Assembly: GCA_004431415.1 (NCBI GenBank)
Contig: QPMI01000494.1
Location: 310,001 to 374,000 of the forward strand
Length of the DNA: 64,000 nucleotides
Direction: 5' to 3'
Source: Cyanophora paradoxa CCMP329
Lineage: Eukaryota > Plantae > Glaucophyta
This document shows positions 6,005-29,635 of this stretch, piece after piece. The notes under the pieces were generated by a model. The model did no database searches and was not told the DNA's origin. It was given only the letters and a program-made list of their open reading frames with translations. Made by a program: the position numbers and the translations under genes. The stretch's first letter is position 1, and every line of letters begins with the position of its first letter.

Positions 6005-7283
6005 CGCCCAGTGTTGGGCCTACTAGTAGTTCAACGGTTGGCCCGGCGCCGGCGCGGGCGCCGGCCGGGGCAGCGGCGCCGCGGCGGGGCCGCCGGGCCA
6101 CCAGGCCAAGGGTCGGAACGAAGCGAAGAATGGTCTGATTTCATAGAATACTCACTAGTACATATACAAGTAAATACGTGCCCTAATTAACGAGAGGAGG
6201 CTCCCGGGTACGTAGCGCCCCGGCTAGGGCCCGGCGGGGCCGGGCCCGGGGCCGGGGGCGGGCGGTCTTTGATCTTGGCTCTACAAAGAAGCGGGGAATG
6301 TATTTCAAAGATTTCCTAGAGCGAGGGAGGTCGGGAGAGGGGCCAGGGCCAGCCCCGGCTAGGGCCCGGCGGGGTGCGGGGCGGGGTGCGGGGCCGGGGC
6401 CGGGGCCGGGGCCGGGGGCGGGCCCCGGGAGGCGGGCGGCGCGGAGCTCGAGGCCGTCGAACAGCTCCCAGCAGGCCGCGTCGACGGCGGCGTAACTAAG
6501 GAAAGAATAACTAAGGGTATGCCCCATCGGCCCGGCGGACCTTGGCCGCCCTAATAAAATTAACTCTATATATAACCTTCACCCGTACCTAGGCCTGACA
6601 GCCTAGTTTGTTTGTGATATTTCATAGATTTCCCCCAGGCCGTCGAAGAGCTCCCAGCAGGCCGCGTCGACGGCGGCGGCGACCTCCCCGCCCCCGCCCC
6701 GCTGCTGCACCCAGTTCACCGAGGCCAGCATCTGCGGCAACGTCGACGTCAGCTGGAACAGAAGTACAGTGCTCGTCTTGTTAAAGCTCGCGAGGATGGT
6801 TAAGCTTGTCTTGCCCAACTAATAATTAAAGTGTGATTATATAACGCTTAAGCCAAAACTGAGCTAAACTCACCATGCGGTAGTCGACGGGGAGGTCGAC
6901 GGCCTTGGGGTCCGCGATCCAGACGGGGAATTTGGGGAGGCGCAGCTGGTGGTGCGCGTACTGCAGCTCGTCGTCCCCTGCCGCGCGATCAAATCTAGGG
7001 GGGGGAGGGTGGGGGGGGGTACGGACAGTTCTTGGAGGCGACGTAGGCGGGGGAGAGGAAGAAGAGGAAGGCGCGGCAGAGGTTCATCGCCTCCTGCGAG
7101 CCCTCATTGGTCGACGGAGACGATTCAGTTGGGAGGGGGGGTACATGGCGCACGCCGATCTTGGCCATCCAGCGCTGGCCGGCCTTCAGCTCGCGGTCGA
7201 CCCTGCGAGGAGCGGACGCTCAGCGGCGCAAAAAGGCGTGGCGGGGCGTGGCGGGGCGTGGCCGGGGCCGGGGGAGGGGGCGT

Positions 7284-7324
<41 letters not shown>

Positions 7325-8130
7325 CGGCGCGCCAGACAGCGAAGCCGGCGGCCTCGAGGGCGTCGGCGTACAGGAAGACGACCGCCGCGTCCGCGTGCGC
7401 GTAGCTGCGCTCGCGCTCAACGGTCGGAGGGCTCGTTTCATGAGGGCCCAGCACCTTAGGAAAAGGTCCCAGCGCTTGCCGTCGGCGGCGGCGGCGGCGG
7501 GGCCCGGGGAGCCGTGGCGGGGCGGCGGGGCGGCGGGGGCGGCCAGCGCCGCCGCCTCGGAGAGGATGCGGTGGCGGGCGCCTGCGTGGGCCACGCCCAT
7601 CTCCCGCAGCGCCCCGTCCGTTAGGGCGAGCAGCGCCGGGCCGTCCGTGTACGAAAACGCCGGCGCGAACCTGCGGCCGCGCGCTCAGGTGAGCGGGCGG
7701 GCGGCGTAGGCGTAGGCGGGTGGCGGGAGCTCTAAACTAAAGAATCGCTAAAGTATCGTACGCCCAGGTGAGCGGGCGGGCGGGCGGGCGGCGGGGGCGG
7801 CGGGGGCTGCGCGCGCACTCGGCGAGGGGTCCCCGCGAGCGGATCCACTCGACGACGTGCGCCTCCCTCCACTGCCGCACGTCCGCCTGCGGGGGGAGAG
7901 GCGGTGAGAGGGGCGGGTGGGTGGGAGGCGGGGGCCTGGGCGCACGGGGGCAGGGAGGGCGGCTCGGGAGGCTCGGGCGGCTCGGGGGCGGCGGCCGACG
8001 GCGGCGGCGGAGCGGGGGCGGTGCGGGAGGCTCGGCGGCGGGGCGGGCTCGGGGGGGGACGAGGCCGGCTCGACGAGGCGCTGCTCGCAGCTCGCGAGGG
8101 CGACCAGCAGACCCGACACGGGCCGCGCGT
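6005..8130. repeat. Segmental duplication copy A (SAM-TIR exons, introns and 3' flank)
   Basis: Closely similar to ~25795-27965, including introns and the flank gaacgaagcgaagaatggtctgatttcatagaata. Confidence 0.9.
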
Positions 8131-9820
8131 TGTCGGTCCACCTAGGAGGAGGAGGGTGAGCTAGTGGCCATATGCATGCTCGGCGTCGCGCGCGAGAGCT
8201 GCGGATGGAGGGGAGTGGATCAGGTGAAGAAGAGGGGAGGGGGCGGGGGGGGGGGGAGGGGGGGGGGGGGGGCACGGACCCGCAGGAACGCGTTGCAGAG
8301 GATGAAGGACTGCCCCGCGATGATCGCCTGCGAGGGGGGTAAGCGAAAGAAAGCAGGTGGGGTGGAGGGGCGAAGGTGGGGTACGGGCCTCGACGGCAAC
8401 GAGTATGAACGCGCCGTTCTTGCACACGAGCACCTCCGACTGGAGGCAGCGCTCGATGGGGTACGTGTTGAACGTCGGGCTGCCCGCGGGTAAGAGACGG
8501 GAGGGGAGGGGTACACCTCAAGAAAGAGATGGGGTACCTGAAGACGGGGAGCTCGAAGAGGGGTAGGGCCGCCATGCCCTTGCTGAGGAGCCAGCCACGC
8601 ATCGAGTAGTCCGAGCAGTAGTCGCCAACCGGATCATGTACTGCGAAATGATTCGGAAAGGGAAGAAGGGGGGAGTAGACGGGGGGGTACCCCAGAAGGA
8701 TAGGGATTTGACGGAGGCCGAGTCGGGTACAGGGAGACGGTGAGACTCGAAAAGAAGGTTCTTCCCCGAGCGAATGAGGTTCTGGGGGGTATCGCGCGAT
8801 TTCAGCGATTTTTGAGAACTGCCTCCGCGCGGATTCGAACCTGGAGCCCCACGGCGACCATGACCTCCTTGACGGGGGTCTGCCAGTTCTGCGGGACGGG
8901 ACGCGGTCGGCTTCGGCGGGGACGGGTACGAGGGCGGCGGGGGCGGGGCGGGGCGGACCTGCGGGCGGGGTACGATGGCGACGGCGTTGTTGTCGGGGGC
9001 GATCCAGGACGCCTCCTGCGGGGAAGAAAGATGAGCGGGAGAACAGGAAAGCAGACCATCCATAAGAAAAAGGAGGGGGGGTATCTAGTTGAAGTCGAGG
9101 CAAACCAGCCGCGGCGGGAGACGCGCAGGCGGCGGGTGATAAGGCGCCGGCCCCCTTACTCCCCGCGGCCGGCCGCCCGACGGCCAGTTCAGGACCGGCC
9201 AGGGGACAGCTGCAGCTGCAGCGCCCGGCGGGGCCGGGCTCCAGGGCTCGGCGCTGCGCGGGGGCCGGGACGACGGGCGCGGCGGGAGGTCGTCGCGGCC
9301 TGCGCGAGATCGAAAGCCGTGAGCCGCGGCGCGCCCGCCGGCGCTGAAGCTGACTGGGCGGGCGGGCGGGCGGGCGGCGTGAGGCGCCCTCGCGCCCGGC
9401 TCGGCGCGGCGAGGCGCGCTCGCGGGCGGCGAGCACGCTGCCGCGCGACACGCCGCCGCGCGAACCCCCGCTCCGGTACCGGTGCTCTCCGGCGCCCCGC
9501 GCGTGGACCAGCTCGCCCCTGCGCCGCGCGCCGGAGAAGGCGCTGAAGGCGGCCAGCGCCGGCTCCTCCCGCCGGCCGGCGCGGAGGCCGATGAATCGCT
9601 CACGGCACACGACTCAGCGGTCGGGCGCGGCAGCGATGAATCGGAGCTAAGCGTGAGCAATCGGAGTCGGCGAATGCGGAGAGAGCAGCGGTGGATCGCG
9701 GCGCGGGAGTTCCGGCGAAGTCGATCGTGAAGACGACCGACGAAAGAGACGTCCTGCAGCTGACTCGGGCAGTCAGCATTGCTCGGGCGGAGCGCAAGGG
9801 GCGAGGACGTGCGCACTGTG
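6603..9820 (-). CDS. SAM-TIR domain protein, copy 1 (unknown N-terminal exons, short BBS1 remnant, Pro-rich linker, SAM, TIR); 5' end approximate
   Basis: Spliced SAM: ADVRQWREAHVVEWIRSRGPLAE|FAPAFSYTDGPALLALTDGALREMGVAHAGARHRILSEAAAL. Spliced TIR: WDLFLS|YAHADAAVVFLYADALEAAGFAVW|VDRELKAGQRWMAKIG|EAMNLCRAFLFFLSPAYVASKNW|DDELQYAHHQLRLPKFPVWI, with the Glu at the catalytic position (6967-6969). Confidence 0.8.
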
Positions 9821-10037
9821 CATAGGGGGCCTGCACCGAAGTCCTACGAGCAAAGTCCTGCCAGATCGACTACAGATCGAAGGATTCCAATGGAAGGGCG
9901 CGATCATCGAAGTCGGAAGTCGATCCAGAGGGGTATACGTACGGATCCCCGGAAGGTCGAGCCGCTGAGCTCCGACTCGTCTCCGAGCAGATCGGGCGCG
10001 AGGGATATCGGCTGGGCTATAGCTAGCCGCAGCTTCG
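9821..10037. promoter_or_regulatory. Putative short bidirectional promoter between the SAM-TIR gene (-) and NLR1 (+)
   Basis: A minus-strand intron-like segment at 9754-9816 (GTGCGC...CTGAC...CTGCAG) lies ~220 nt from the plus-strand ATG at 10038; inferred from gene geometry only. Confidence 0.35.
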
Positions 10038-12549
10038 ATGGGCTGCGGCGCCAGCAGCGTTTGCGGGGGCGGGGGAACAGCCCCCCGGTCGCCGGAAGAG
10101 GCGGATAACGATCGAGCTGCAGCTGCCATCAGCAACAGCGGCACACGTGATGGCTCAGTTGCGGGGATCGGTGGTCCGGATCACGCGGTGTCCGCTGAAG
10201 AAGCCGCGAGCGCTGCCAAAGTCGCCGACGCAGCTGCAGCTGCAGTAGAGCAGCGCCCGAGCGGGCTCTACGGCATGTGCGGGCCCGAGGAGCTGATGGT
10301 GATCACGCGGGTCGAGTTCGTGCAGACCGCTGCGCAGCTTGCGGGCCTGCTGCGATCAGAGCGTGTGCGCGCGGCTGCGAGCAAAGATCCAGAGAAGGAA
10401 GTGCCGCCGATGCTGCCGGCGGTCGACGACCTGGCGCGGAGAGGGAACGCAGAGCAAGCGCTGCGGGAGCTCTGCCACGAAGGCGCGTATACGTACACGC
10501 GCGGTCCGGCCCCGAGCCGCGCGACCCGTGCGCAGTTCTACGAGCCTTTACGGACGACGGATCGCTCGCGTTCTCTGCGGACGTTGCGGCCCTCGTCCAC
10601 TCCGGCGACCCCGACCTCTGCCGCGCCGTGCGCTCCGCCCCGCCCCGCCCCGCGGCCGCCCCGCCCCGCGCCTCAGGCGCCGCCCGCCCGCGATCGAGCC
10701 GCGCCTCCGCCGCAGCTCGTGGACGCGCTCCTGCGGAAGGCGAGCAAGGCGATGCTGGCCGACCACGCCGTCCTCTCCGCGCTCGCCTACGTCGCGGGGC
10801 ACCTTCCCCCGGACACGCTCACCGCCTCCGACTGGGCCGCCGTCCTCAAATTCGCATCCGAGCAGGCGAGCGGCCGCGCCGCGCCGCGCCGCCCGCCGGC
10901 GCCACCTGAAGGGGCGCGAACGCGCAGGTTGAGCTGCTGAGCGTGGAGGGGCTGGAGCTGGGCCCGAGCGACGCGGAGGCGCAGGTCGCCCTCGAGCTCA
11001 CCGCCGCCGTGCTCGCCGCCTACGAGGCCGCCTCCAGCGCCGCCTCCAGCGCCCCAGCCCCCGCCGCCCCCGCCCGGCCGCCGCTGCCGCCGCCCCCGCC
11101 TCCACCCCCGCCGACCCCGCCGCTACGGTGGCGGAGGTCGGCGACGGCGCCTCTGCCGCCTCGCCGCCCGCCCCCGACACCGCCTCCACCGCACCGGCCC
11201 CCAAGGTCCGATATCACCCCTTCCCCCCCCCCCCCCCCCCCACCCCCCCCCGCCCCCGCCCCGCCCCGCCTCGTCCCCCCCTTCCCGCCCCCCCTTCACC
11301 CCCCCCCCCCCAACCACCGTTCCCCATTCCTCTCTTATTCTTGCCTCCTTCGAACTTCGCCCCCCCCTCCCTTCAATGACTCCCTGGGACCCACTCCCCC
11401 CCCCCCTCCCCACCCCCCCTCCCCCCCCGACCTCCCGAACCCTCCTCCTCCCCCCTTTTACCCTTGGTCGCCTTCCCCTCGTCACTCCCCTCCTCTTCCC
11501 CCGCCCCCCTGTACCCCCCTGCCCCCCCGCGCCGCGCGCCCTCTTCTCTCTTCCTGAAACTGGCGGTGCGCAGGGAAGCGGCTGGATGTCGACGAGAGGC
11601 GCATTGCGGCGCTGAGCGAGAAGCTGAAGCGGCTGGAGGGCCGCGCGAGGGCAAAGGGGTGGTGGCGGGCGGAGGCTGCGGCGGTGGTGGCGGGGCAGGC
11701 GCTTGCGAGCGTCCGCAGCGGCGGCGAGCGCTTCGGGGACGTCGTCCGCCGGTGCAAGGCGGCCGGTCCGACCCGTCGAGCCTCCCGCACCGTTGCCCCG
11801 CCTCAGCTTCGGCCTCGCAGGTCGGATTCTGAAGAAGCTCTACGCGGCGAGCAAGGTCATCATGGAGGGCGTCTCCTCCATGGGCGCCACGACCGTCATC
11901 GACCTCGTCTTCTGGGCCAAGGCGCGCCGCAGCCGAACCGGGGACCCTGCCGGGCTCGTCGTGGCTAGCGCTGACTGGCGGTCCGGACCGCAGGACATCA
12001 TGAGCGACGAGAAGGGGGGCATACTGGAGGCGGCGCGGGAGATGTGGAACGACGCGCGCATCGTCGTCGGCAAGGGCGCGCATCTGCAGGGCCAGAACGT
12101 CGACCCCTGGTCCGATCCGCCCTCGGTCTTGAACTCGACGAGGGTGCCGAGCTGACGGGCGGGGGCGGCGGCAGGTACGCGCGGGCGCGGCTGCTGGGGT
12201 CGCTGGCGGCGGGCGGGCAGCTGGAGGAGCTGGAGGCTCTGCTGCGGGACGGCGGTGGGGAGGGGCTCGCGGACTGCGCCTCCAGCCGCCAGCTCGCCCT
12301 CGTCCTCGCCTCCGCCCTCGTCCGCGTGCGCGCCCTCCACCCGGCCCCGGCGGACCCCGCACCCGTGGCTGCGTCCGTAACCGAGCTCTGCCGGGGCCCG
12401 GGGCAGGTGGCGGAGGGGCCGAGCCCCACCCAGGCGGCGGCGGCGGCAGGGCTGCTCGAGCGTCTCGCCAGGAAGGCGGGGGAGCTGGGCGGGGCGGACG
12501 CGGCGGAGATCGCGGCGGGGGCGCTCGCGCACGTGGCGCGGCTCGACGA

Positions 12550-12585
<36 letters not shown>

Positions 12586-15500
12586 GGCGCGGACGGCGCT
12601 CCAGCGCTTGGCGGAGTACGCCAAGCGGGAGGGGGCGAAGCTCCGGCGGCGGCGCAGGCGGCGGCCTCGGTCAGCGTGGCGGTCGGCTGCCTCGCCGGCT
12701 TCCGGCACGGGGCGGCGCGCGTCATGGAGAACGGCGTCGGGCTCGTGGAGGATGTGGCCGAGCTCGTCGCCGACGTGCCCGGCCTCGAAGGGGCGGCCGG
12801 CGTGGCCGGCGACCTCGCGGCGGCGGCGCGGCGCGCGAAGGATGGCCGCTTCGTGCAGCGCGCCCTCTCCGCCCTCGCCGCCCCCGAGCGGCTCCTGCAG
12901 CTCGCGTCCGCGCCCTCGCCCGCCGCGCCCTCGGGCCCAGCTCGGACGGCGAGGTCGGCGCCCCCGGGCAAGCTCAAGAAGGCGCCGCCCCTGCGCCCGA
13001 CGCCGATGCGGGCCAGGGTGAGGAACGGCTACCTGGGGCGCGTGCTCCAGAAATACAAAGAGGCGGTGCGCCCACAGTCGTCGACCGCCGGCACAGCCTC
13101 AACCTGCTGAGGGGCGCCGGACGCGGGGCGCGCGGGGCGGGGCAGGTGGAGGCTGCGGGGCAGGTGGTGAAGCGGGCGCACGTCCACGGGCGGGAGCAGG
13201 ACCTGGCGGACCCCGGAGTCCGCCTGCTGCTCTCCGACCTTGCCGTCGATCTCTGGTGCGCCGCCCGCCGCCCCGGCCGCCCGCCCGTCGTCCGCCCCGC
13301 CCGCTGAGCTCGGCTTGGCCGCAGCGGCTCGGCGCCTTTCCGCCGCTGCCCGGAGCTGGTGTGCGCGAGCAGGGCGTTCGTCTTCGTTGCAAGCCCCGTG
13401 ACGGCGCGGGAGGTGACATGCCTCAAGGCCCTCGACGAGGGTGCGCGGGGGCGACCCGCTCGTTTCTAGACTCGCTATTCAATTTTCTGATTTCGCCCGC
13501 GCGAGCTTCGCCTCATGGCGCCCGGGCCGCAGCGATTGAGACGGGACAAGAGGTCTTCCAGTTCTACCTGAACGGGGCGGAGAGCGTCCTCCAGGCGATG
13601 CCCGTCGGCGTCGACATGCGCCTCAGCCGCTTCGACCGCGTGCGGGCGGTCCCTCTCTGCCCTTTGACGCGAGCCGACCGAGCCCCCGCAGTGGCAGCTG
13701 GACGTGGAGGCGCTGCGGAAGGCGGACGTGTACGCCGCTGCCCGGTCGAACAAGAAGGACCCTCTGGACGTGCTTGCGAGCGGCGTGCAGAAGACGTGCC
13801 GCTTCCCCCGAGAGTACGGCAAGCCGGCGGCTGGACAGAAGCAGCTGACGACGCGCTGGTTCGGCGGGGCTGGGGGCTCGAGCTCCGGGCAGCAGCCGTG
13901 GCCGTCTGCTCCCAAGTGGGTTGTCGAGGAGTCCCTGACGGCCGAGTCCGACATTCATGCCCGCGTTTTCTTCGCTCACGCCTTGAATCCGAAGGACAGG
14001 GAGATCGTTCAAACGTTCTCCACTTCATTGCAAAGCATCGCGTCTTGCTGGTGCGCCCGTTGATGATGGATCGATCGCATGCACGCGTGAACGTCCGCGC
14101 TGCTTATCATGACGCGGCTCTGCAGGTCAGAGGCCGAGCATTGGGAGAAGGGCGAGCGCTGGGTCGACTTGGGTACGTCTTCCTTGGGGGCAGGTGTCGC
14201 GCATCGCTAACGTGGAATCCTCACCCCTGTCGCAGTGGCGCGCGCCATCCGCAACTGCACGCATTTCGTCTTCATTGTGTCACCCGCCATCGACGGCTCG
14301 CAGGTCAGTGGCCCTTAATCGATTATTCATATTAATATTGAATATCTTGATGACGTGAGCTCGCGGCTTGGCAGCATATCCAGGAGGAAGTGGCGTACGC
14401 GTGCAGCCAGGACTGCGCTCTGGTCGCCCTGTACCTCAAGCAGCAGGGGAAGGCCGTCAGGAGCTCGTGGGTGGAGGAGCGCCTGGAACGCGCCGCGCCC
14501 GGCCGCGTGCACAAAATCGATGCCGCCATCGACGTCGACCCAATAGACGCGGCACTCAAGCTTGCGAACGCTGTGAAAATTCGAACCCAAGCGATCGCGG
14601 CTCGCTCGACCGCAGCCACAGCCACATACGCAGGCGCAACCGCAGCAGGGCAGCGGGCGAGGGCCCAGGCCGGCCAGATCCAGCCAGTGCGTTGTTCCCC
14701 GACCGGCCATCCCTTGTATTTGACCCTGATCGAGCCTCGGAGGCTCGGAGAGCTGATGCGGGCGCCCAGGCAACTGCACTCGGGTGGACGGAGGCGGATG
14801 TCGAGTACTGGATCCGATCGCACGAGCCCCTCGCGCAGTGCGCCGCCTGCAGCCAGCGCCGGCCACAAATATGTATAATATATACAGTTTAACGCCGTCC
14901 GACGGTCTGTTTTTGAAGCAGATTCGCGAAGCGATTCTCCGTCTTGAAAGGAAGGGGCCTCCTCTCACTCACCGACTCGGCCCTGAAGCAGCTCGGCATC
15001 AACCATGTTGCTACGCGTAAGCGATTCCTGCTCGAGATTGCGGCCTTGTCCAAGGCCGCACTGGAGAAGTGCGACAGGAAGGTGCTCAGAAGCTTTGATC
15101 GTACAGGCGCGGCGATCTATATTATCTGACATGCTCCGTGAATTGCCTGGTCCAGCTGGAACCGCTGTGTTGGACCGAAGAGGACGTCGTGGCCTGGGTC
15201 CGCTTGCAGGGTCCCCTCGCAAAGTGCGCACCCCTGTTTTCTCGGATGCTCCACTCTCCGCTGTTGATTGGCGGGATTTACAGATTTGCCGAACTGTTCA
15301 CGTTCACCGGGGGCCCAGGACTGCTCTCACTTTCCGATGTGGATCTCGAGCGCATGGGCGTGGACAACTTCCCGGCGCGGCAGCGTCTCCTCGAAAAGAT
15401 AGCCGAGCTTGAAGCGAATGCAATCGCACAGTCACTCCACAAGAATGCCAAGCCCGAGACTGACACAGCCGCGGAGTCACGAGTTGTCGAGTTGGTGCGC

Positions 15501-18500
15501 TGGCCCTGCCGTGGCCGTTTAATGCGAGTATTCACCGACATGCACGCCGGCAGGCTCCGGCGCCATCTCCTGCCGAGGTCGATGGCATCAGAGCATCAAT
15601 TAAAAAAGTACGCTTGATCATGATGGATTAATTGAATTTGGATGATTTAGATGCTCTTCAATAAAATTCATGCAATGGATCCGGACAGTTTGCGGCGGAG
15701 GTGGCCGACGAGCTCCGCCAGGACCAGGACCTTGCGCTCTACGTCCCGCCCCGCGCCACTCCGGACCCGAAGCTGCCGTTCAAGGTGGCCCCCGGCCCAA
15801 GTTCCCGGCTCTAAACCTAGGTCTCATGTGTGCACGCGGCGTGATGGTGACTCCACAGCATCATGTGGATCTTCACGAAAAGGCTGTGACGTTCCTTAAG
15901 GCGCTGCGGCCCGGCGCCAATGTCGGCGAAGATGCCGCAGCGAAGCCGAAGTCAAAGCGCGTTCTGTTATTGTTGGGTGGCGCAGGCACATCGAAGAGCA
16001 CATTTGTGCGCTTCTTGGAGCGCGACGTCTGCGAACAATGGGCGGAGTCAGAAGACACAGCAGGCCCACAGCTGCCTGTCGTGGTGCTTGTTTCGCTGCC
16101 GCAGCTCGCCGGCATGGCGGGCGGTGTGCCCAAAGGATCCGGACTGCGGCAGCACGTGGCGGCCAAACTTGGTGTCGCAGAGAAGGCGCTTCCAGCTCTC
16201 CGAGACAGGTATGCATCTCGTTTATGTTAACGGTAGCGGCCGTTTCGTTGACGTGTACGTCAGCATCGGGCTCGTGCTGCTTCTTGATGGATATGACGAG
16301 ATGGGCGTGACGGACGGCATGAACCTGTGGCAGGAGAACGGCGTTTCAGACTGGGCGAGCGGCGCACTTCTCACCTGCCGAACGGAGTTTCTCGCGTCGC
16401 TTCCCGTTGACAAGCCGCACGAGGTGCTTTCTCTTTCCTCTACGATGTTCCGCTTTTCTGAGTGCTATCTGATCATGAGTCTGTCAATACTCTTGATACT
16501 CTCGGGCTATCTGAGTCGCGCCTGGCAGGCCTCTTTCGCACCTGCCGAGAAGGATGGTGAAGCCGATCGCGACGATTCGGCTCTGGTGCAGCTGCACACG
16601 GTCCCCTTCACAAACGACCAGGTGTGCCGGGCGGCGCGGAATTCTACATGCAAACGCAACGATACAGAGTTAGAACCGCTTCTGCGCAGCGGGACAAGTA
16701 CCTGCAGCACTACGTCGAGCGCCACGAGAACGACGAGGCGGCATGGACCTTCGAGCAGTACCAGGTAGCCTTTGCAAAGACGCCGGGCCTGGCTGCCTTT
16801 GCGGAAAACCCTTTCTCCCTGTCGATGGCCGCCCGCGTCCTGCCCACAAAGTCCGTCCTTTGTGCGTCCAACTAAAAGATTCCACACTGACATGTACACG
16901 TGTTGCGTACAGGACGGCAACCGGAGGACGGCTCGGCATGCGGGGCCTTTACCGGCTGTTCTTGCGGGACTGGCTGAGGCGGGAGCTGTATCGGGGCGGC
17001 ACCGAAATCCCGCGGGATGCCACAGGTGCGGTGCTCAAGCCTGCATGTTGCTAGCACTTGCAGAATAGCAAACAGTTGCAATCGGCCGCATGCACAGTCC
17101 AAGAACGAGTGGAGGATGACTTTGTCAAGGAGGGGACAGGGTTGTGCACGCGACTTGCATGTCTTCTTTTCCGCGTGCGCTCGACTTTGGCTTCTCGCAA
17201 TCAGTCGAGCACTGGAATTCCATAAACGTTAAATGCGCAGATGTCAGCCAGCCAAGCAATGATCCCGGACCCACGGGTCCAGAGGCAGCAGAAGACGGGT
17301 GCTGAAGTGAACTCGAAGCCCGTAGCTGCTCCCCCCCCAAGCCCAGAGCAGGGCGCTCTCTGCGCGCTGCTGGGCGACCGTGCATTGCTTCTCGTGCGCA
17401 ACAGCTGTCCGTTGCGGCAGTGGAGGCAGGGCGGCTCGCTTGGCTTCGCGTTTGTGCACAAGACGCTGCAGGAGTTTCTGTCCGCGGAGGCACTCCTTGA
17501 CTCGGTGCGTGAAGCAAAGGGGGCAGCAGGGACCTATAGAGAGAGAACGCCGACGGCAGGCCCTGAGGGTGGAGGGCTGTTGTGCAGATAGTCGATTGAG
17601 TTATAATTAGGGCTGTACTGATCGTGACAACTGTCTGTGCACAGTTGTCGAGCAAGGCTACTCCGAGTAATTATAACGGCATCGACATCACATTGCACAC
17701 ACGGTATGCCATTCAATTGCTTGATTGAGCGTCCGATGGACAAGCTTACAGTGACATCGACAACACGCAGGAGCATTGTGGGGGATACGACGCTTGTCCG
17801 ATTTCTGGCGGAGGCTGTCCAGCACGAGCCCCAGGCCATCGTTGCGGACGCTCTCGTGCGGATCATCGAATTGAGTCGGCCGCGGGATTCTTCTGGGAAG
17901 GCAATCGAGAATGAAGCACCAGAGGTAGCCCCGGAGGTTGTTGCAGCGGCGAACGCAGCGACCATCCTCGTCGCTGGTGCGTGCAATTGTTTCATTGATA
18001 GTTCGTGAGTGTGTGCCCTGCCGAGTGAGGTTCTTGCGATGGCCCCTGCAGGCCACTACTCGCTGGCGGGCCGCAACTTGCGGGGTGTGCGTATACCAAG
18101 AGCCAATCTGTGGCGACTGGAAGCAGCAGGTGCAGATCTTCAAGAGGCGGATCTGCGACACTGTGCCGTAAACGAGGCATGCCTGTCGAGTGTGGATCTG
18201 AGAGGTGCACGCATGGACAACTGCTTTGTGATGCAGCATCCGGCATTGCTGCATAAGAGCGCCGTTCGCGCCGTTGCCTGGACACCGGTGCGTGCAGATA
18301 TCCCGCTGCAGCGGTATTGGTGTGCAAGGGAGGTGCAGCAGGGTGGGGTAATCATAGGACAAGCGAGTCTCAGGGTTGTGGGGTCGCTGACAGAAGCACG
18401 GGTGTGCGGCCTGCAGGACAGGAAGTGGATCGTCTCGGGGAGCGATGACAACCTGGTGCGGGTGTGGGACGCAGAGACAGGGACAGAGCTGAGGAAGTTG

Positions 18501-21500
18501 GAAGGCCACAAGGACAACATCATCTCAGTGGCTGTACATGTCTCCACAGTGCGTGAGGGAGGGGCGGGGGTGAGATGTGGTGGAGGACATGCATCTGGGC
18601 GTGCGAAGCTTAAGGCGATGGGTCTGGCCCTGGGCCGTGATAGCAAGCAGTCCCGACACCTAAAGAGTCGCAATCGAGCACGAGCATGGTTTGGGGCCGT
18701 GAAGGCACTGACAGAAGCACGGGGGTGCGGCCCGCAGGATGGGAAGTGGATCGTCTCAGGGAGCAATGACAAGTCGTTGCAGGTGTGGGACACTGAGACA
18801 TGAATCGTCTCGGGGAGCAATGACAAGTCGGTGCAGGTGTGGGACGCTGAGACAGGGGCGGGTCTGCGGAAGCTGCAAGGCCACACAGGCTGGGTAACGT
18901 CCGTGGTGGTTTCAGCGGTGCGCAAGCCCTGAAAGGAAGGGTGGTGACACAGGCCTAGGGGCCCGAATGATGTGGCCCAGTGGGATGGGACTGCATGCCC
19001 GGTGGGGTCCGGTTTGTGCACATTTTAGAGCCACAAGTTTTCTGATGAGGGCGCGGGGCACGGCTTGCAGGACGGAAAGCGGATCATCTCGGGGAGCAGT
19101 GACAAGTCGGTGCGCGTGTGGGAGATGGAGACAGGGGCGGAGATGCGGAAGCTGGAAGGCCACACGCGTAATGTCAACTCGGTGGCGGTTTCGAAGGTGC
19201 GCATGGGAAGGGCTGCAGCGGGGCATCCCAGAAGATGGGCAGTAGGGCCTGCAAAGGCGATGAGGCCGGCGTGGGGCTGGGATAGCTGGTGGAGCGCCTC
19301 CATCTAGACTAGATGGATTTCACGGTCTAGAGAGAGCGAGCTCAAGTTTTGGGGCTGTGGGGTCGCTGACAGAGAGCGGGGGCTTGGCTCGCAGGACGGG
19401 AAGCGGATTGTCTCGGGGAGCGACGACAAGTCGGTGCGGGTGTGGGACATGGAGACAGGGGCGGAGCTGCGGAAGCTTGAAGGCCATACGGGCTGTGTAC
19501 ACTCGGTCACGGTGTCGGAGGTGCGCAAGGGAAAGTTGGGGGCGGGGCGGCTTGGAAGACGAGCTCCAGGTCTTGTCAATAGATGGGAGCGGTGCGGCTT
19601 TTGATTGGTGTGATGCCCAAATAGCAGGCTGAATGGTTCTGGCAACGCTAAGTGGGGTCCAGGGTAGTCACACTGAGTGAGGTTTAGAGGAGCTGTCCAG
19701 TAATGCGGGCGCGGGGCGCGGCTTACAGCTGTTGAGCTGCAGGACGGGAAGAAAATCATCTCCGGGAGTTCTATCTACGACGGGTTCCGAGGAGACAACA
19801 CGCTGCGGATGTGGGATGCGGAGACAGGGGTGGAGCTGCTGCAGCTGCAGGGCCACACGGGCTCTGTCAGCTCTGTGGCAGTGTCAGCGGTGCGTGATCA
19901 TGAGCTTGAGAGAGGCCCGGGGGGGGGGGGAGGGGGGGGGAGGGGGGGGAGGGGGGGGGAGGGGGGGAGGGGGGGGAGCGGTGGCCTGGCCATGGCCTGG
20001 AGGACGTGCAGCGGCACCATCGGATTGCCAAGAGGATGGAGTTGGCATGGAGCTGTGATAGTTGTAGCAGAGGAGTTTCAATTCGGTGATGCAGAGAGGG
20101 TCTAGGGCGAGCATGATCTAGCTATACATTATAGGACACATATAGGGCCGTGCACATGAGGACACTGACAGGGGCACGGGGGCATTATGCACAGGATGGG
20201 AAGCGGATCATCTCGGGGAGCACGGACAAGTCGGTGCGGGTGTGGGATGCGGAGACGGGGGTAGAGCTGCGGCAGCTGCAGGGCCACAAAGACTCGGTCA
20301 ACTCGGTGGCACTTTCAATGGTGCGCAAGGGAGGGGCGGGAGCGGGGCGGCCCAGAGGACGTGCATGAGCCGCTGAACAGGGTGGACTTGCAAAAGGGGA
20401 TGAAATTAATATTGGCTTGGGCTGCAATAGATGTAGCAGAGCTGTGAGCAGTTTCTGCAATGTCGGCACCAGGATGCCTGATGGGCCTGGGGTTCAAGGG
20501 CGAGCAAGTCTCAGGGTTGTGCACATGCACATGAGGACGCTGACCGGGGTGCGGGGGCATGACACACAGGACGGGAAGTGGATCATCTCGGGGAGCAACG
20601 ACAAGTCGGTGCAGGTGTGGGACATGGAGACAGGGGCGGAGCTGCGGCAGCTGCAGGGCCACAGAGACTTGGTCAACTCGGTGGCACTTTCAGCGGTGCG
20701 CGAGGGACGGGCGGGGGCAGGGTGGCCCGGAGGACGTACATGTTCATGTGCAGGGGACTTACAAAGGGGATGAAATTGGCTTGGGCTGCAATAGAGTCTG
20801 GGAGAACGAGATTTGGGGCTGTGCACTTGAGGGCGCTGACGAGGGCATGGCGGCATGACGCATGCGCACAGGACGGGAAGCGGATCGCCTCAGGGAGCAC
20901 GGACAACTCAGTGCGGGTGTGGGATGCGGAGACAGGGGCGGAGCTGCTACAGCTGCAAGGCCACATCTTCTGGGTCTCCTCGGTGGCAATTTCAGCGGTG
21001 CGCAAGAGCGGGGGGTGCGGGGAAAAGGGAGAAGGGGAAAGGGAGGGGAAGGGGGGGAGGGAGGTAAGGGGCCGGGGGGGGGGGGGGGGGGGAGGGAGGT
21101 AAGGGCCGGGGGGGAGGGAGGTAAGGGGCCCGGGGGGGGGGGGGGGGGGGGGCATGAGCCAAGCCGGCTCGAGCCGGACTTAGGCACCGGCAGCTCGAGC
21201 CAAGGCCAGCCGAGACGCTCGAGGGGAACAGCAAGACAGCAAGGCCTGCTCAAGCTGGGTGGGGCATTGTAAGGGGCGAGCCGGCTTGAGATGCTGTCTA
21301 GCGCGGATATTAATTTAGATTTATTATGAATATATCGAATTATATACGACCGGGACTAAGTACCCCCCTCCTTGAGCCTGCTGGCAATTCGGGCTCAAGC
21401 TAAGCCCCACCCCTTTCGATATCTCACAATACAGCGCTAGCAGTGCATATTAAGGCGATAAAGTTGGCAGGGGGCTGCTAGCATGTGCTGCAACTAGCGT

Positions 21501-23437
21501 GTGCAGGCCCTCTGAGCAAGCAAGTTTCAGGGACTTGAATGCACTGACGGGGCACGGGCGCGCTTCACACAGGATGGAAAGCGGATCGTCTCGGGGAGCA
21601 TAGACCACTCGGTGCGGGTGTGGGATGCAGAGACAGGGGCGGAGCTGCTGCAGCTGCGAGGTGAACTGGCCATGGGCTCCATCCGCTCGGTGGCTCTGTC
21701 AACGGTGCGTGATGGAAGGGCAGGGGTGGGGTGGCCCAGGGAATATTAATGTGCAGTGCGGCTTGTGAAGAGGCCTAGGATGGGGCCCGGCGCCTGGGAG
21801 GGCTGCAATGAGGGGTGCAAATTGAAAAGTTTCCGTTGACACCCAACGGGGTCCAGGGCAAGCGAGTCTCAGGGTTGTGAGGGCTCTGACAGGGGCTCGG
21901 GGGCGTGGTGCACAGGATGGGAAGCGGATCATCTCAGGGAGCGACAACGAGTTGGTGCGGGTGTGGGACACGGAGACAGGAGCAGAGCTGTGGAAGCTGG
22001 AAGGCCACATGGGCTCTGTATACTCCGTGGCGATTTCGGCTGTGCGCAAGGGAGGGACGGGGGTGGGGCGGTCTGGAGGACGTGCTGCAGGGCCTACCGA
22101 GTTCCAGATCTAGAGTCATTGGGCCAGCGTGAGGCGAAGTGTACGATAGCGGGGGGAGTGTTTTTGGCAACACTGGGCAGTTATAATTACCAGGGTCGGA
22201 ACAAGCAAGCATGTTTCATGGCTGTTATCAAAGCACTGACTGGGCCCCCGGGACGTGGGTGCATTGCTGCAGGACGGAAAGTGGATCATCTCGGGGAGCA
22301 GTGACAAGTCGGTGCGGGTGTGGGACATGGAGACAGGGGCGGAGCTGCGGAAGCTGGAAGGCCATACGGGCTGTGTACACTCGGTGGCAGTTTCGAAGGT
22401 GCGCATGGGAAGGGCTGGATCCGGAGCAGAGCAGTCCAGAAGACGGGCAGTGGGGCCTGTAAAGGCAATGAGGCCGGCGTGGGGCTGGGATAGCTGGTGG
22501 AGTGCTTCCGTCTAAACTAGATGGGTTTGATGGTCTAGAGAGAGAGAGAGAGAGAGAGGGAGCGAGGTTTGGGGCTGTGGGGTTGCTGACAGAGAGCGGG
22601 GGCTTGGCTCGCAGGACGGGAAGCGGATTTTCTCGGGGAGCGACGACGAATCGGTGCGGGTGTGGGACATGGAGACAGGGAAAGAGCTGCGGAAGCTGGA
22701 AGGCCACACAGACAGAGTCACGTCTGTGATGGTTTCGGCGGTGCGCATGGCCCAGCGGGAAGGGCTGGAGCAGGGCATCCCAGAGGTCGGGCAGTGGGGC
22801 CTGCAATGACAATATTAATGAGGCCGGCGTGGGGCTGGGATAGCTGGCAGAGCACTTCTTGCGACTCGGAAATTTTGAGGGGGTCTGGCATGGGGCCAAC
22901 GTGTTTAGGATGGTTCTGACGGGGGCACGGGGGCATGGCGCACAGGATGGGAAGCGGATCGTCTCGGCAGGCGGGGGCAAATCTGTGATCATCTGGGATG
23001 TGGAGACGGGAGAAGAGCTGCTGCAGCTGGAAGGCCACGGGCACGTGGGCTGGGTCTGCTCGGTGGCAGTGTCAATGGTGCATGTGGGAGGGAGCTAGGG
23101 CGGGACGGCCTAGAGGGCGTGCAGCGGGGCCCGCGGCCTGCAAAGGCAATGGCACAAGCCTATTCCTATGTATCCCTTCAGAGACACGTACACATAACGG
23201 GGCCCGACGGTCCAGGGGAGCTTCCGGCGACGCCCAACGGGGTCCAGGGCAAGCGAGTCTCAGGGTTGTGAGGCTCGAGCTCTGACAGGGGCTTGGGGGC
23301 GTGGTGCACAGGATGGGAAGCGGATCATCTCGGGGAGCAACAACAATTCGGTGCGGGTGTGGGATGCGGAGACAGGGGCGGAGCTGCTGCAGCTGCAAGG
23401 CCACACGGACTCTGTCACCTCAGTGGCGGTGCTGGCG
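10038..23437 (+). CDS. NLR-like STAND protein NLR1: N-acylation motif, helical/ARM-like region, TIR, SAM, SAM, NACHT NTPase, pentapeptide repeats, 14 WD40 exons (3' end unresolved)
   Basis: Starts MGCGASS. TIR at 13962-14580: RVFFAHALNPKDREIVQTFSTSLQSIASCW|SEAEHWEKGERWVDLV|ARAIRNCTHFVFIVSPAIDGSQ|HIQEEVAYA. SAMs at 14770-15081 and 15156-~15420. Walker A LLLLGGAGTSKST (~15976), Walker B LVLLLDGYDE (~16270), then LLTCR, NPFSLSMA, FVHKTLQEFL, AAANAATILV, pentapeptide LAGRNLRGVRIPRANLWRLEAAGADLQEADL, and WD40 exons at 18417-23437. Confidence 0.9.
18417..23437 (+). repeat. Array of 14 highly similar phase-0 WD40 exons of NLR1
   Basis: Exons 18417-18548, 18738-18917, 19071-19196, 19395-19520, 19743-19889, 20195-20320, 20570-20695, 20872-20997, 21573-21704, 21916-22041, 22273-22398, 22615-22740, 22946-23077, 23312-23437; each runs cag|GAY...|gtgc and is a multiple of 3 long. 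Confidence 0.95.
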
Positions 23438-25794: not shown

Positions 25795-27175
25795 GCCCAG
25801 TGTTAGGCCTAGTTCAACGGTTGGCCCGGCGCCAGCGCGGGGCGCCGGCCGGGGCAGCGGCACCGCGGCGGGGCCGCCGGGCCACCAGGCCAAGGGTCTG
25901 AACGAAGCGAAGAATGGTCTGATTTCATAGAATAGTCACTAGTACACATGCAAGTTAATCCTTGCCCTAATAAAAAAGAGGAGGCTACCGGGTACGTAGC
26001 GCCCCGGCTAGGGCCCGGCGGGGCCAGGGCCGGGGCCGGGGGCGGGCCCCGGGAGGCGGGCGGCGCGGAGGCCGTCGAAGAGCTCCCAGCAGGCGGCGTC
26101 GACGGCGGCGGCGACCTCCCCGCCCCGCTGCTGCACCCAGTTCACCGAGGCCAGCATCTGTGCGCGCGCCGTCGACGTCAGCCGCAGAAGTAGTACAGTG
26201 CTCGTCTTGTTGAAGCTCGCGAGGATGGTTGAGTTTGTCGTGCCCAAGTAATAATTAAAGTGTGATTAAAAGTGCCTAAGCCAAAACTGAGCCAAACTCG
26301 CCATGCGGTAGTCGACGGGGAGGTCGACGGCCTTGGGGTCGGCGATCCAGACGGGGAACTTGGGGAGGCGCAGCTGGTGGTGCGCGTACTGCAGCTCGTC
26401 GTCGCCTGCCGCGCGATCAAATCTGTGGGGGGGGGGGGGGGGGGGGCGGGGGGGGATGGGAGGGAGTACGGACAGTTCTTGGAGGCGACGTAGGCGGGGG
26501 AGAGGAAGAAGAGGAAGGCGCAGCAGAGGTTCATCGCCTCCTGCGCGCCCTCATCGATCGACGGAGACGATTCAATTGGGGGAGGGGGTACACGGCGCAC
26601 GCCGATCTTGGCCATCCAGCGCTGGCCCGCCTTCAGCTCGCGGTCGACCCTGCCGAGAGCGGACGCTCAGCGGCGCGAGGACAACGGGGCCGGAGGGGGG
26701 AGGGGGGGGGCGCGCCAGACCGCGAAGCCAGCCGCCTCGAGGGCGTCGGCGTACAGGAAGACGACCGCCGCGTCCGCGTGCGCGTAGCTGCGAACGAAGG
26801 TGTTTGTGGGGGGAGGCAAGGGGCAAGGGGTAGCGGGCACCTCAGGAAGAGGTCCCAGCGCTTGCCGTCGGCGGCGGCGGCGGGGCCCGGGGCGCCGTGG
26901 CGGGGCGGCGGTGCGGCGGGGGAGGCCAGTGCCGCCGCCTCCGAGAGGATGCGGTGGCGGGCGCCGGCGTGGGCCACGCCCATCTCCCGCAGCGCGCCGT
27001 CCGTTAGGGCGAGCAGCGCCGGGCCGTTCGTGTACGAAAACGCCGGCGCGAACCTGCGGCCGCGCGCTCAGGTGAGCGGGCGGGCGGCGTAGGCGTAGGC
27101 GGGTGGCGGGAGCTCTAAACTAAAGAATCGCGAAAGTATCGTACGCCCAGGTGAGCGGGCGGGCGTCGTGGGCGG

Positions 27176-27208
<33 letters not shown>

Positions 27209-27965
27209 GGCGGTGCACTCGGCGAGGGGTCCCCGCGAGCGGATCCACTCGACGACGTGTGCTCCTTCCACTGCCGCACGTCCGCCTGCGGGGGGGGGGG
27301 GGGGGAGGGGAGGGGGGGGGAGCGGGCGGTGAAAAGGGCGGATGGCGGGGGCTCCGCTGGGCGCACGCACGGGGGCAGAGAGGGCGGCTTGGGCGGCTCG
27401 GGTGCGGGATGGAGGCCGGCGGCGGAGGAACGGAGGGCGGGGCGGGGGGCTCGGCGGCGGGGCGGGCTCGGGGGGTACGAGGCCGGCGGCTCGGGGGCCT
27501 CGGCTTGCGCGGGGGGCTCGGGAGGGGGCTCGGGGGCGGGAGAGGGGACCCGCGGGGAGCGGGGGCGGCTGGCAGGCGGGGCGGGGGCCCAGGGGGGTAC
27601 GGAGATGGGCCAGGCCTCGCCGTCCTCCTCCTCGTCGGGGGGCGGCTGGGCCGGCGGCTCGTCGGGGAGGGTCCGACCCAGGTCCGCGTGCCGCGAGAGG
27701 ACCTGGGTGGGGTACAGGGGTCAGAGGGGGTACATACGGGGGTACAAGAGGTACAACAGGGGTGCGCGCCTGGAGGGAAAGGGCGCCGGAGCGGTGGAGG
27801 ACGGCGAGGGCGGCTTCGGCGCGGCCGTAGCGGCCGAAGCGGAGTCCCAGAGGCGGGTCGTCGGCCCCGCCGCCGGGCCGCCCGGAATCGACGAGGCGCC
27901 GCTCGCAGTAGAGTCGGACCTCGCCGCTCGCGAGGGCGACCAGCAGGCCCCACACGGGCCGCGCG
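25795..27965. repeat. Segmental duplication copy B (SAM-TIR exons, introns and 3' flank)
   Basis: Closely similar to 6005-8130 in the same orientation; copy A lacks most of the ~27480-27890 segment. Confidence 0.9.
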
Positions 27966-29635
27966 GGCGGCGGAGCCGCCGCCGCCGCCGCCGCCCGCGG
28001 GTCATAAGCCGCCGCCGCCGCCCCGCCGCCGCCGCCGCCTTCCGGCGCGGGCACGGGTACGGGCACGGAAACCTCCATCGCCTCGAGGCACGTGACGGCC
28101 GCCGGCATCTGTAGGCTGCCCCCCGCGGGCGTCAGGGAGGGGGGTAGGCTATTAGAGAGGGATGGGGGGTACGGACGAGTAGGCGCGGGCGCCCTCGGGG
28201 CGGTACGCGTGCAGGGCGCCGCCCCTGCAGGCGGCGAAGATGAAGTCGGAGCCCGGGGCCAGCGCGAGGGCCCGGACCGGGGCGTCCAGCGCGATCGAGC
28301 CGACCAGCGCCCCGCCCTGCGCCCCCGGGCCGGCCCGCGGATCAGTCCAGGCTGCCACTTTAAGGGCGGACGGGAGGACGCGACGGTCTAGCCACTTTAG
28401 GGATCAGTATAGCTTGCCACTTAAAGGGATCAGTCTAGCTTGCCACTTCTTTAAGGGAAGGAGGGCGGGCCTTGACGATGTGGATGTGGCGGTCGCGGCA
28501 GGCGGCGGCGATGACAAATCGGCCCCCGCGGAGGGCGCCCGAAGCGCGCAGGAGGACGGGGGCGCTGGGCAGAGGCACGGCCGCCTCAGCGGAGTCGGCG
28601 TCGTCGCCCATGACGAGGAGCCCGGGGGCGTCGGAGCCGACCAGAAGGTTGGAGAGGGCGTCCTGCCGATCTTCCTCGCCCGCCTCACGCCTCACGGCCT
28701 CCATGCACGTCACTGCCAGGGCGATAAGGGGGAGGGGGGAGGGGGGAGGGGGGGGGATGAGGGGGTACGCTCGCCCTTCGGAATGCGGGTGCCGACGGCG
28801 CCGGTGCGCGCGAGGGCGTACCCCTCCCGCGCGGCCGGCTCGGCGGCTAGGAGCCCCTCCGACTTGTCGGAGAGGGGTACGCCGGCGGCCCGCAGCGCGG
28901 CCAGCCGCTCGCACGCGCGCCCGCATGCGGCCTCACCTGAGTCGCGCCCCAGCTCCGCCCACACATCCTCCTCCTGCGCGGCCGGGGGTAAGCGAGCGGC
29001 GGGGGGGTACGCGGCGGCGGGGCAGGGGGCGGACGAGGGGGTCGGCCTGCGTGGGGCGAAGCGTGAGCTTGAGGTAGGGGCGCAGGCTCCGGTAAATGAA
29101 CAGGAAGCCTCCGCTGGCGACCACAAGGAAAGGGACGCGCGGGGTCGAGGCCTCCGGGTACACCGCCGCGAGCGCCACCGGCCGCCCCAGCGCCGCGTGC
29201 CTCGCCACCAGCTCCGTCCCTGCGCGCCGCCGAGGCGTCGGGCCGGGGCGGGCCCAAGGCGGGCCGCACGCGCATGCAAGGGGGCGCACCGCGGAACAGG
29301 CGGAACGAGCTGTCTTCTCCGGCGATGGCGAGATGCACGTCGCCGTTGGAACTGAGGTCAATGAAGCACGCCTGCTGCTGCTTCGCCTTCCCGCCCGACG
29401 GCTCGCGCCACGCGCGCAGCCAGACGCTCTGCGCGCGCGGCGCGTGCTCTCAGACCACGATAAGAATCCGTAGCTAAGCGCTAGTCGACTGTTGACGTGT
29501 CCGCGTCCGTGCGGGAACTTCGTGCAAGGGGCTGCGAGCTCCCGTCGCAGCGGGCGAGAGTGCTGGACTTCGGCGGCGCAGCTAAGCGCTAAGCGGCGTA
29601 GTGCGAACCTTCGGATCCGCCATTGGATCCGCCAT
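26008..29635 (-). CDS. BBS1-like beta-propeller, Pro-rich linker, SAM, TIR fusion protein (1-nt frameshift in the SAM exon: pseudogene or sequencing error)
   Basis: BBS1-like motifs in the expected order: WLRAWREP, IDLSSNGDVHLAIAG, PFLVVASGGFLFIYRSLRPYLKLTL, EEDVWAE, DALSNLLVGSD, FVIAAACRDRHIHIVK, LLVALASGEVRLY, LRFGRYGRAEAAL, VLSRHADL...PPAQ. The open 336-nt exon 27702-27367 is in phase with the SAM exon. TIR has SKNC|DDELQYA; stop at 26008-26010. Confidence 0.8.

Follow-up and report, generated by a model that had tools for sequence, protein, structure and literature searches.

An NLR-type gene with its own TIR and two SAM domains lies between two SAM-TIR units in the glaucophyte Cyanophora paradoxa

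Results

Organisation of NLR1

We analysed a window of 64,000 nucleotides (the whole stretch of DNA considered here) from Cyanophora paradoxa CCMP329 (contig QPMI01000494.1, positions 310,001 to 374,000; tig00020902 in the public gene models), in which a gene of the nucleotide-binding oligomerisation domain (NOD)-like receptor (NLR) type, here called NLR1, lies between two units, gene 1 and gene 3, that each encode a SAM and a TIR domain. This layout is real, and the DNA that holds it has a high GC content, many short introns and donor sites of the GTGCG type. Comparison of the P-loop exon of NLR1 with 1.84 billion representative proteins returned 15 matches, 13 of them from Cyanophora paradoxa (EukProt). 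NLR1 itself is represented among them: the top match, P0001 (99% identical), is its public model, tig00020902_g15007.t1. The public model of gene 1 (P0018, tig00020902_g15006.t1, 428 residues) was retrieved through alignment of single exons and the NLR cassette. Searches used single exons or public models, and exons were joined by their coordinates only for frame checks and domain comparison.

NLR1 opens with a long N-terminal region, which is followed by a TIR domain, two SAM domains, a NOD with a predicted NACHT fold, pentapeptide repeats and a WD40 array. Its features are as follows.

10038..23430, plus strand: NLR1 (tig00020902_g15007, P0001); the public model of 2009 residues is truncated at both ends
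10038..13639, plus strand: N-terminal region of about 900 residues, common to NLR2 (tblastx, two exons) and P0002; RNA pieces at 11664-12501
13950..14570, plus strand: TIR domain; exons are the end of 13692-14050, 14126-14172, 14236-14303 and 14375 onward; Glu in HIQEEVAYA
14743..15081, plus strand: SAM1; exons 14743-14837 and 14922-15081, with a phase-2 intron after the PLAQ codon
15156..15494, plus strand: SAM2; exons 15156-15223 and 15284-15494, with a 60-nucleotide phase-2 intron after the PLAK codon
15689..17600, plus strand: putative NACHT-type NOD; P-loop GGAGTSKST at 15976-15999, Walker B LLLDGYDE near 16270-16300
18060..18293, plus strand: pentapeptide repeats (Pfam Pentapeptide, 32 bits), 51% identical to those of NLR2
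18417..23430, plus strand: WD40 array, about one blade per exon, with at least 14 DGK(R/W)I(I/V)SGS units

A single open frame runs through ten exons (13692-16208), with GT-AG at every site, and carries the TIR, SAM1, SAM2, the linker and the P-loop exon. A paralog of identical architecture (P0002, tig00020660_g12507, 1776 residues) lies on another contig; it and NLR1 are collinear across 10410-18536. The original prediction of a NACHT-WD40 gene that carries its own TIR and two SAMs is borne out by this one open frame, by the Pfam matches to TIR_2 and SAM_1, by the WD40 repeats and by the fold predicted for the paralog P0002.

The first in-frame ATG of NLR1 lies at 10038, 237 nucleotides upstream of the annotated start, and the frame opens with MGCGASS (10038-10058), which we take to resemble a myristoylation-palmitoylation motif. 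Transcription was followed in assembled contigs, which cannot prove the absence of a transcript, from several RNA-like runs (X1 and X3 among them) and from a run, X12, that behaves as DNA and covers the whole region. From 10048 on, contigs of three RNA-like runs are identical to the window; they reveal two introns (10481-10542 and 10619-10715), and further pieces reach 12501. The RNA-like runs have zero depth at 9600-9999 and 11200-11599. The only Pfam match in the N-terminal region is a sub-threshold one to ARM_5 (25.8 bits against a cut-off of 27). The stretch at 13300-13640 (plus strand; about residues 800-870 of P0001, RAFVFVASPVTAREVTCLKALDEA) resembles a worn second TIR core, and Pfam finds nothing there.

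Two details of the TIR exons were settled against P0002. An acceptor at 14360 for the fourth TIR exon was dropped, as P0002 supports the 14375 of the public model (HIQEEV). The omission of the first TIR strand (ARVFFAH) from the public model was rejected, and the strand is retained here, because P0002 keeps a matching TRVYFCH.

The nucleotide-binding module

Both the Walker A P-loop and a Walker B of the DGxDE type are present in NLR1 and are invariant across the family alignment. The Pfam NACHT profile (PF05729) gave no match on P0001:1280-1790 or P0002:1100-1640 at an E of 0.01, and it fell below its gathering score in all ten family members scanned (best E 2.1e-6; 15.6 bits against 26.7 for P0002). 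Only generic P-loop matches were returned when the NOD exons were searched singly against Pfam and the PDB, or when the NOD family profile was searched against PDB sequences. The fold was assessed on the paralog P0002, which is 64-70% identical to NLR1 in the P-loop exon, and not on the window's own protein. An AlphaFold2 model of P0002:1080-1560 (predicted local distance difference test, pLDDT, 78.7) has the NACHT modules of NLRC4, NOD2 and NLRP3 as its top Foldseek matches, with E values down to 2e-10 over about 500 columns. Because this model best matches NLRC4, NOD2 and NLRP3 despite the sub-threshold Pfam scores, the NOD of NLR1 is predicted to be a divergent NACHT. Where the original prediction looked to Pfam for TIR_2, SAM and NACHT, the first two are found above their gathering scores on the public models and the third stays below its own. 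NLR1 joins a C-terminal repeat sensor (WD40 and pentapeptide) and an N-terminal effector domain (TIR) in one protein.

TIR domains and their relatives

The TIR_2 profile (PF13676, cut-off 28) scores 41 bits on P0018, 36.1 bits on P0001:940-1290 and 43.7 bits on P0002, and single exons reach only an E of 0.011. The fold was again seen on the paralog: a model of P0002:780-1075 (pLDDT 70-91 over the TIR part) matches the SPARTA TIR, MyD88, TRR-2, ThsB and the SARM1 TIR, and the P0002 TIR used as a single-sequence query against the PDB gave zero matches. In HMMER alignments of P0021, a paralog of the gene 1 TIR, the Glu of CDDEMQ shares its column with the conserved Glu in a bacterial TIR (7uxr) and in the top Toll-like receptor (TLR) TIR chain (7ylf). 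This column reads DDE in gene 1 (motif DDE(L/M)Q) and EE in NLR1 and P0002, so that the conserved Glu is kept as had been claimed, and it is the catalytic position of TIR NADases.

Over the whole TIR, gene 1 is 56-70% identical to a family of Cyanophora proteins with leucine-rich repeats (LRRs) and a TIR (P0020-P0025), with which it shares the linker motif ADGK(A/R)WD and a last exon beginning MLASVNW. The public models of these proteins contain LRRs but no SAM, and two of them (P0021 and P0022) terminate in a CaaX-like CSVQ; a SAM and different upstream parts set gene 1 and gene 3 apart. The TIR of P0019 (tig00020902_g15004) is 69-78% identical to that of gene 1. This third TIR gene of the gene 1 subfamily has KPAAAEA repeats at its N-terminus and belongs to the same contig, where it precedes g15006 by two gene models and falls outside the window.

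Gene 1

Gene 1 lies upstream of NLR1 on the opposite strand, and its features, with the region between the two genes, are listed here.

6603..9063, minus strand: gene 1 (tig00020902_g15006.t1; P0018, 428 residues), with a chimeric N-terminal part, SAM and TIR; stop TAG at 6605-6603
8280..9063, minus strand: 5' exons of gene 1, residues 1-162 (9063-8959, 8888-8841, 8781-8692, 8641-8540, 8481-8386 and 8324-8280)
7946..8130, minus strand: BBS1 exon remnant (VSGLLVALASCEQRLVE...), whose translation resembles the BBS1 exon of gene 3, VWGLLVALASGEVRLY
7540..7886, minus strand: SAM; exons 7886-7819 and 7670 onward, with a phase-2 intron after the PLAE codon
6603..7480, minus strand: TIR; exons are the end of 7670-7455, 7404-7333 (GC donor), 7202-7154, 7093-7027, 6977-6874 and 6731-6603
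9064..10037, no strand: divergent intergenic region from the gene 1 ATG to the NLR1 ATG, 975 nucleotides; covered by X12, with zero depth in the RNA-like runs at 9600-9999

The exons were placed by exact peptide matches of P0018 to the window, and seven of them, traced by eye and by script, encode the SAM, linker and TIR and end at the TAG at 6603. The Glu of the TIR lies in NWDDELQYA, and an RNA contig piece stops exactly at the donor of exon 6 (6874). In the public model a GT donor at 7372 costs the TIR 13 residues. We rejected this donor: all paralogs keep the residues (they read ...ALEAAGFKIWVDRELKAGQKW..., with the 13 that P0018 lacks) and the three differences between gene 1 and gene 3 in this stretch are all synonymous. 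Since these residues are real in the paralogs, the intron 7332-7203 must use a GC donor (GC-AG). The introns at 7203-7332 (minus strand) and, in gene 3, at 26650-26715 (minus strand) are spliceable only with a GC donor (TG/GCGCGC), and the former holds a run of about 40 C. A last-exon acceptor at 6752 was dropped; the relatives read DYRMMLASVNW, so the last exon of gene 1 starts at 6731.

The 5' part of gene 1 has a different origin. RNA contigs of 1.5 kb, at a depth of 21-41, cover 9063-8280 with about 4% of letters differing from the window (about 96% identity), show minus-strand GT..AG joints at 8479/8538, 8781/8841 and 8888/8959 and diverge from the window beyond 8285, and the DNA-like run X12 contains both versions of these exons. 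The exons and introns at 8280-9063 are thus a duplicated fragment of another, well expressed gene elsewhere in the genome. No family was found for the N-terminal 165 or so residues (Pfam on the whole model, PDB sequences and Atlas), and a homologue search with the 154-residue frame of exon 2 was empty over a length range that excluded the 428-residue public model. Downstream of these exons the 3' part of the BBS1 remnant serves as an exon in the public model. The g15006 model calls for transcripts that connect 8280 with 8080 and 7886, and such a connection is found in none of the RNA contigs.

The mapped coordinates uphold the divergent orientation of gene 1 (minus strand) and NLR1 (plus strand). 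The gap of about 220 nucleotides proposed between them does not hold, with start codons (9063 and 10038) 975 nucleotides apart. As a SAM-TIR gene, gene 1 stands in part: Pfam supports its SAM and its TIR, and its 5' portion is a mosaic of foreign exons and the BBS1 remnant rather than part of a clean gene.

Gene 3 and the duplication

Beyond the other end of NLR1 lie a second SAM-TIR unit and the exons upstream of it.

26049..27285, minus strand: SAM-TIR unit of gene 3, a copy of that of gene 1; the last intron has a GC donor, and SAM_1 scores 21.9 bits on the second exon
27700..29635, minus strand: BBS1-like exons upstream of the gene 3 SAM, propeller part only; Pfam BBS1 E 1.7e-9 and 9.7e-8

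The segment 6005-8069 recurs in direct orientation, together with its introns, at 25794-27487, giving a duplicate of about 2.1 kb that extends to about 8069 in the one copy and to 27487 in the other. Between the exons of gene 1 and gene 3 there are 16-17 synonymous and 6-7 non-synonymous changes, and the introns have diverged by 13.6% against 5.2% for the exons. This synonymous excess, together with the greater divergence of the introns, indicates that the SAM-TIR coding sequence has been under purifying selection.

Gene 3 carries a 1-nucleotide deletion at codon 8 of its first SAM exon, which is frame-shifted relative to the acceptor. With this deletion the SAM from AHVVEW on is in frame with a 439-codon frame (27071-28387) that begins in the BBS1-like exons and in which the SAM is without its initial conserved Trp. 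The BBS1-like frame runs through a long Pro-rich stretch into the SAM, as in a truncated BBS1-SAM-TIR fusion or two adjacent genes; the BBS1 Pfam matches cover positions 51-111 and 177-254 of 254. An apparent lost acceptor in gene 3 is not a lesion, since the last exon starts at the position equivalent to 6731. The C-terminal tail (...PGPAGP) resembles that of P0019, and the tail of gene 1 has been replaced after an insertion. The BBS1 remnant in gene 1 suggests that gene 1 derives from a parental gene 3 by partial copying. The second SAM-TIR gene that had been placed some 2.5 kb past NLR1 is indeed found there, tail-to-tail and about 2.6 kb beyond the last WD40 exon; that it is an intact gene is not sustained, given the 1-nucleotide deletion and the BBS1-like exons upstream.

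Transcription of the SAM-TIR units

Where RNA contigs over the SAM-TIR unit carry letters other than those of gene 1 (at 6913, 6931 and 7181, and at three positions in 7548-7638), these are exactly the letters of gene 3, and the gene 1 letter is kept only at 7181, in X1 and X3. From this match, a gene-3-type SAM-TIR mRNA exists at low depth, and the expression of gene 1 itself is at best weak. Expression of gene 1 is thus not confirmed by these contigs, which mostly carry gene-3-type letters and none of which joins the parts of the gene. A frame-shifting joint at 6972/7373, which skips 400 nucleotides and whose ends are non-canonical, occurs in the RNA-like runs and in X12. Its presence in the DNA-like run suggests that the genome probably has, at another place, one more SAM-TIR copy with this deletion.

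The SAM family

The SAM peptides of the three domains are located at 7818-7871 (minus strand), 14785-14838 (plus strand) and 15171-15224 (plus strand). Single exons match SAM_1 (PF00536) or SAM_2 (PF07647) at or near the gathering score (23.7-25.6 bits); on the models, SAM_1 reaches 32.1 bits on P0018 and 54.9 bits, in two stretches, on P0001:940-1290, where SAM_2 scores 49.1 bits. The gene 1 SAM, SAM1 and SAM2 have their intron at the same place and in the same phase, after the second base of the codon following PLA. Their identities are as follows.

Gene 1 SAM and NLR1 SAM1: 52%
Gene 1 SAM and NLR1 SAM2: 47%
Gene 1 SAM and P0002 SAM1 or SAM2: 45% or 50%
NLR1 SAM1 and P0002 SAM1: 60%
NLR1 SAM2 and P0002 SAM2: 70%
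SAM1 and SAM2 inside one protein: 45-48% (45% in NLR1)

The claim that the SAMs are one sequence family agrees with these values (45-52% identity) and with the common intron position and phase, and the three domains share a common origin. As the gene 1 SAM is as far from those of NLR1 (47-52%) as these are from each other (45%), it is an old third branch of the family and not a matched partner or a recent copy of its neighbour.

Among the proteins fetched, the gene 1 SAM matches only the SAMs of P0001 and P0002, and the closest relatives of the gene 1 TIR (P0019-P0025) have no SAM in their public models. The PDB sequences that best match the NLR1 SAM tandem are those of Caenorhabditis elegans TIR-1 (E 2.3e-4) and human SARM1 SAM1-2, followed by other SAM proteins. 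The SAM part of the P0002 model is of low confidence, and a complex prediction for P0001:1100-1250 with P0018:205-280 scored 0.00, which weighs neither for nor against binding.

NLR2

A further paralog, NLR2, lies at 38400-44700 (plus strand) of the window and has the N-terminal exons, the Walker B motif and the pentapeptide and WD40 parts of NLR1. It is without the TIR-SAM-SAM cassette, and from the shared N-terminal exons to the P-loop it spans about 0.7 kb, against 3.6 kb in NLR1.

Discussion

On balance we favour a reading in which local segmental duplication and exon shuffling have given the locus its shape as a cluster of NLR-type and TIR genes. For NLR1 itself, the best PDB matches of the SAM tandem, which are TIR-1 and SARM1, tip the scales towards a self-contained TIR-NLR. 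Building on the anatomy and the homologies described above, and on the observed transcription of NLR1 and of gene-3-type mRNA, we infer everything that concerns activity and assembly. In such a receptor the WD40 array would bind a ligand, the NACHT module would oligomerise and the protein's own TIR would be clustered with the help of the tandem SARM1-like SAMs. Once clustered, the TIR may cleave NAD+ or make a nucleotide signal, and the probable N-terminal acylation motif MGCGASS would place this activity at a membrane. The flanking SAM-TIR units would be paralogs of each other by the duplication of about 2.1 kb, with a TIR derived from the Cyanophora LRR-TIR family and a SAM from the same old family as those of NLR1. 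Gene 3, joined to a BBS1-like propeller and transcribed, would be the parent-like copy, and gene 1, by the NLR1 promoter, would be a derived copy of chimeric make-up, in which both the 5' and the 3' end are new and expression of its own is slight or absent. If these units act at all, they most likely do so as separate SAM-oligomerised TIR proteins, and the shared SAM would reflect common descent within a duplication-prone cluster.

Several known systems offer points of comparison. SARM1 and C. elegans TIR-1, which are NADases of the order ARM-SAM-SAM-TIR, have tandem SAMs beside a Glu-bearing TIR as NLR1 does, and the faint ARM-like match in the N-terminal region of NLR1 adds to this likeness. 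The order differs, however, being TIR-SAM-SAM followed by NACHT within an NLR, and gene 1 has one SAM before its TIR, so that ARM-SAM-SAM-TIR is found in neither. By sequence the gene 1 TIR family is closer to TLR and bacterial TIRs than to SARM1. With regard to the ring assembly of SARM1, an octamer, and its control by nicotinamide mononucleotide and NAD+, the likeness of NLR1 lies in the sequence of the SAM tandem alone. In TIR-NLRs (plant TNLs and the animal and bacterial TIR-STAND proteins), as in NLR1, an N-terminal TIR, a STAND NTPase and C-terminal repeats are combined, and activation by induced proximity would be expected. NLR1 differs from them in its NOD, which is of the predicted NACHT type and not NB-ARC, in having WD40 and pentapeptide repeats instead of LRRs, in the two SAMs between TIR and NOD and in the roughly 900 residues ahead of the TIR.

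The closest parallel to the arrangement of the genes is found in fungal NWD2/HET-S and other amyloid-motif pairs, where a NACHT-WD40 receptor adjoins a gene that shares a short homotypic module, and where the WD40 blades are, as in NLR1, highly similar to one another. Here the neighbours share a SAM, which is present in NLR1, in gene 1 (divergent, 975 nucleotides away) and in gene 3 (tail-to-tail, about 2.6 kb away). In contrast to the fungal pairs, the shared module is a folded SAM internal to the NLR and not an amyloid motif, and NLR1 has its own effector domain. Fungal NLR-effector pairs are defined by recurrence of the pairing (PMC9815663), whereas the Cyanophora pairing is seen at one locus. 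A search with P0018:205-428, which covered proteins of 235-749 residues sharing five-residue words with the query, returned eight proteins, none of them on the P0002 contig tig00020660. SAM_Ste50p at the N-termini of fungal NLRs (PMC9815663) and TIR-SAM and TIR-NACHT hybrids in amphioxus (PMC2575513) are on record. Both cases are lists of domains in single proteins, and the passages reached by term searches of the two papers mention neither a TIR-SAM-SAM-NACHT-WD40 protein nor a SAM-TIR neighbour. Our literature search returned no paper on NLR-type genes in Cyanophora or glaucophytes, or on SAM as an NLR adaptor.

The original prediction went further, making NLR1 a sensor and the flanking SAM-TIR genes its separately encoded effectors, recruited when NACHT oligomerisation seeds a SAM polymer and thereby amplifying NAD+ cleavage. 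We think this unlikely. It would fit the adjacency and divergent orientation of the genes, the single SAM family with one intron position and phase in all three, the restriction of the SAM, among relatives of the gene 1 TIR, to the copies beside NLR1 and the purifying selection on the SAM-TIR coding sequence. The PDB matches of both SAMs also include aveugle (the partner of CNK) and ANKS6, which form heterotypic SAM pairs. Three of our own observations likewise weigh against the self-contained receptor that we prefer: the divergent arrangement beside NLR1 could allow co-regulation, the gene 1 SAM finds only NLR1-type SAMs among the proteins fetched, as might be expected of a dedicated adaptor, and weak expression of gene 1 is possible, given the X1 and X3 contig that has its letter at 7181. 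Against recruitment, however, the pairing is seen once, with no g15006-like protein on the P0002 contig among the proteins retrieved, and the gene 1 SAM (47-52%) is no closer to the NLR1 SAMs than SAM1 is to SAM2 (45%). Gene 1 is moreover chimeric and lacks, among the contigs, a transcript that joins its parts, and the first SAM exon of gene 3 is frame-shifted relative to its acceptor. NLR1 also has a TIR of its own, and SAM at NLR N-termini is already reported in fungi (PMC9815663). A functional pairing of NLR1 with the SAM-TIR genes is thus speculative, and it is improbable that a STAND receptor here recruits a separately encoded SAM-TIR NADase through SAM-SAM polymerisation, as a fourth kind of adaptor, and not through death-fold, TIR-TIR or amyloid contacts.

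A more sceptical reading takes the flanking units to be decaying by-products of duplication, pseudogenes or annotation artefacts without a present function, and leaves NLR1 as the only gene that matters. The 1-nucleotide deletion in the first SAM exon of gene 3 speaks for it, as do the foreign 5' exons, BBS1 remnant and replaced C-terminus of gene 1, and so do the RNA contigs, none of which joins 8280 to 8080 or 7886 and whose letters over the gene 1 5' exons are those of a paralog. The frame-shifting joint 6972/7373, being found in the DNA-like run as well, suggests a further deleted copy in the same vein. Yet the synonymous excess (16-17 against 6-7), exons that are better kept than introns, the intact state of every splice site in gene 1, the existence of spliced SAM-TIR RNA contigs and TIR motifs that are intact when compared with the paralogs make it unlikely that both units are simply relics. 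A non-immune role for the cluster in ordinary signalling or regulated NAD+ metabolism, for instance through a flagellar link suggested by the propeller part of BBS1 (a ciliary trafficking protein) that gene 3 carries, is very unlikely in view of the lineage-specific expansion (13 of the 15 NOD-search matches being Cyanophora) and of the near-identical WD40 blades and Glu-bearing TIR, the usual marks of NLR-type conflict genes.

Were the recruitment of SAM-TIR proteins by NLR1 true, the NLR adaptors would come to include SAM besides CARD/PYD, TIR and amyloid motifs, in a system built from SARM1-like SAM and TIR parts in a glaucophyte, a deep branch of the plant lineage. The TIR-SAM-SAM cassette in a NACHT-WD40 frame shows that an NLR, too, came to hold the SAM-plus-TIR combination of SARM1, be it by independent assembly or from ancient times, which bears on how oligomerisation switches TIR enzymes on. 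As it stands, the locus mainly shows segmental duplication and exon shuffling building chimeric TIR genes around an NLR, and it is a real and moderately interesting new variant among NLR/TIR gene clusters.

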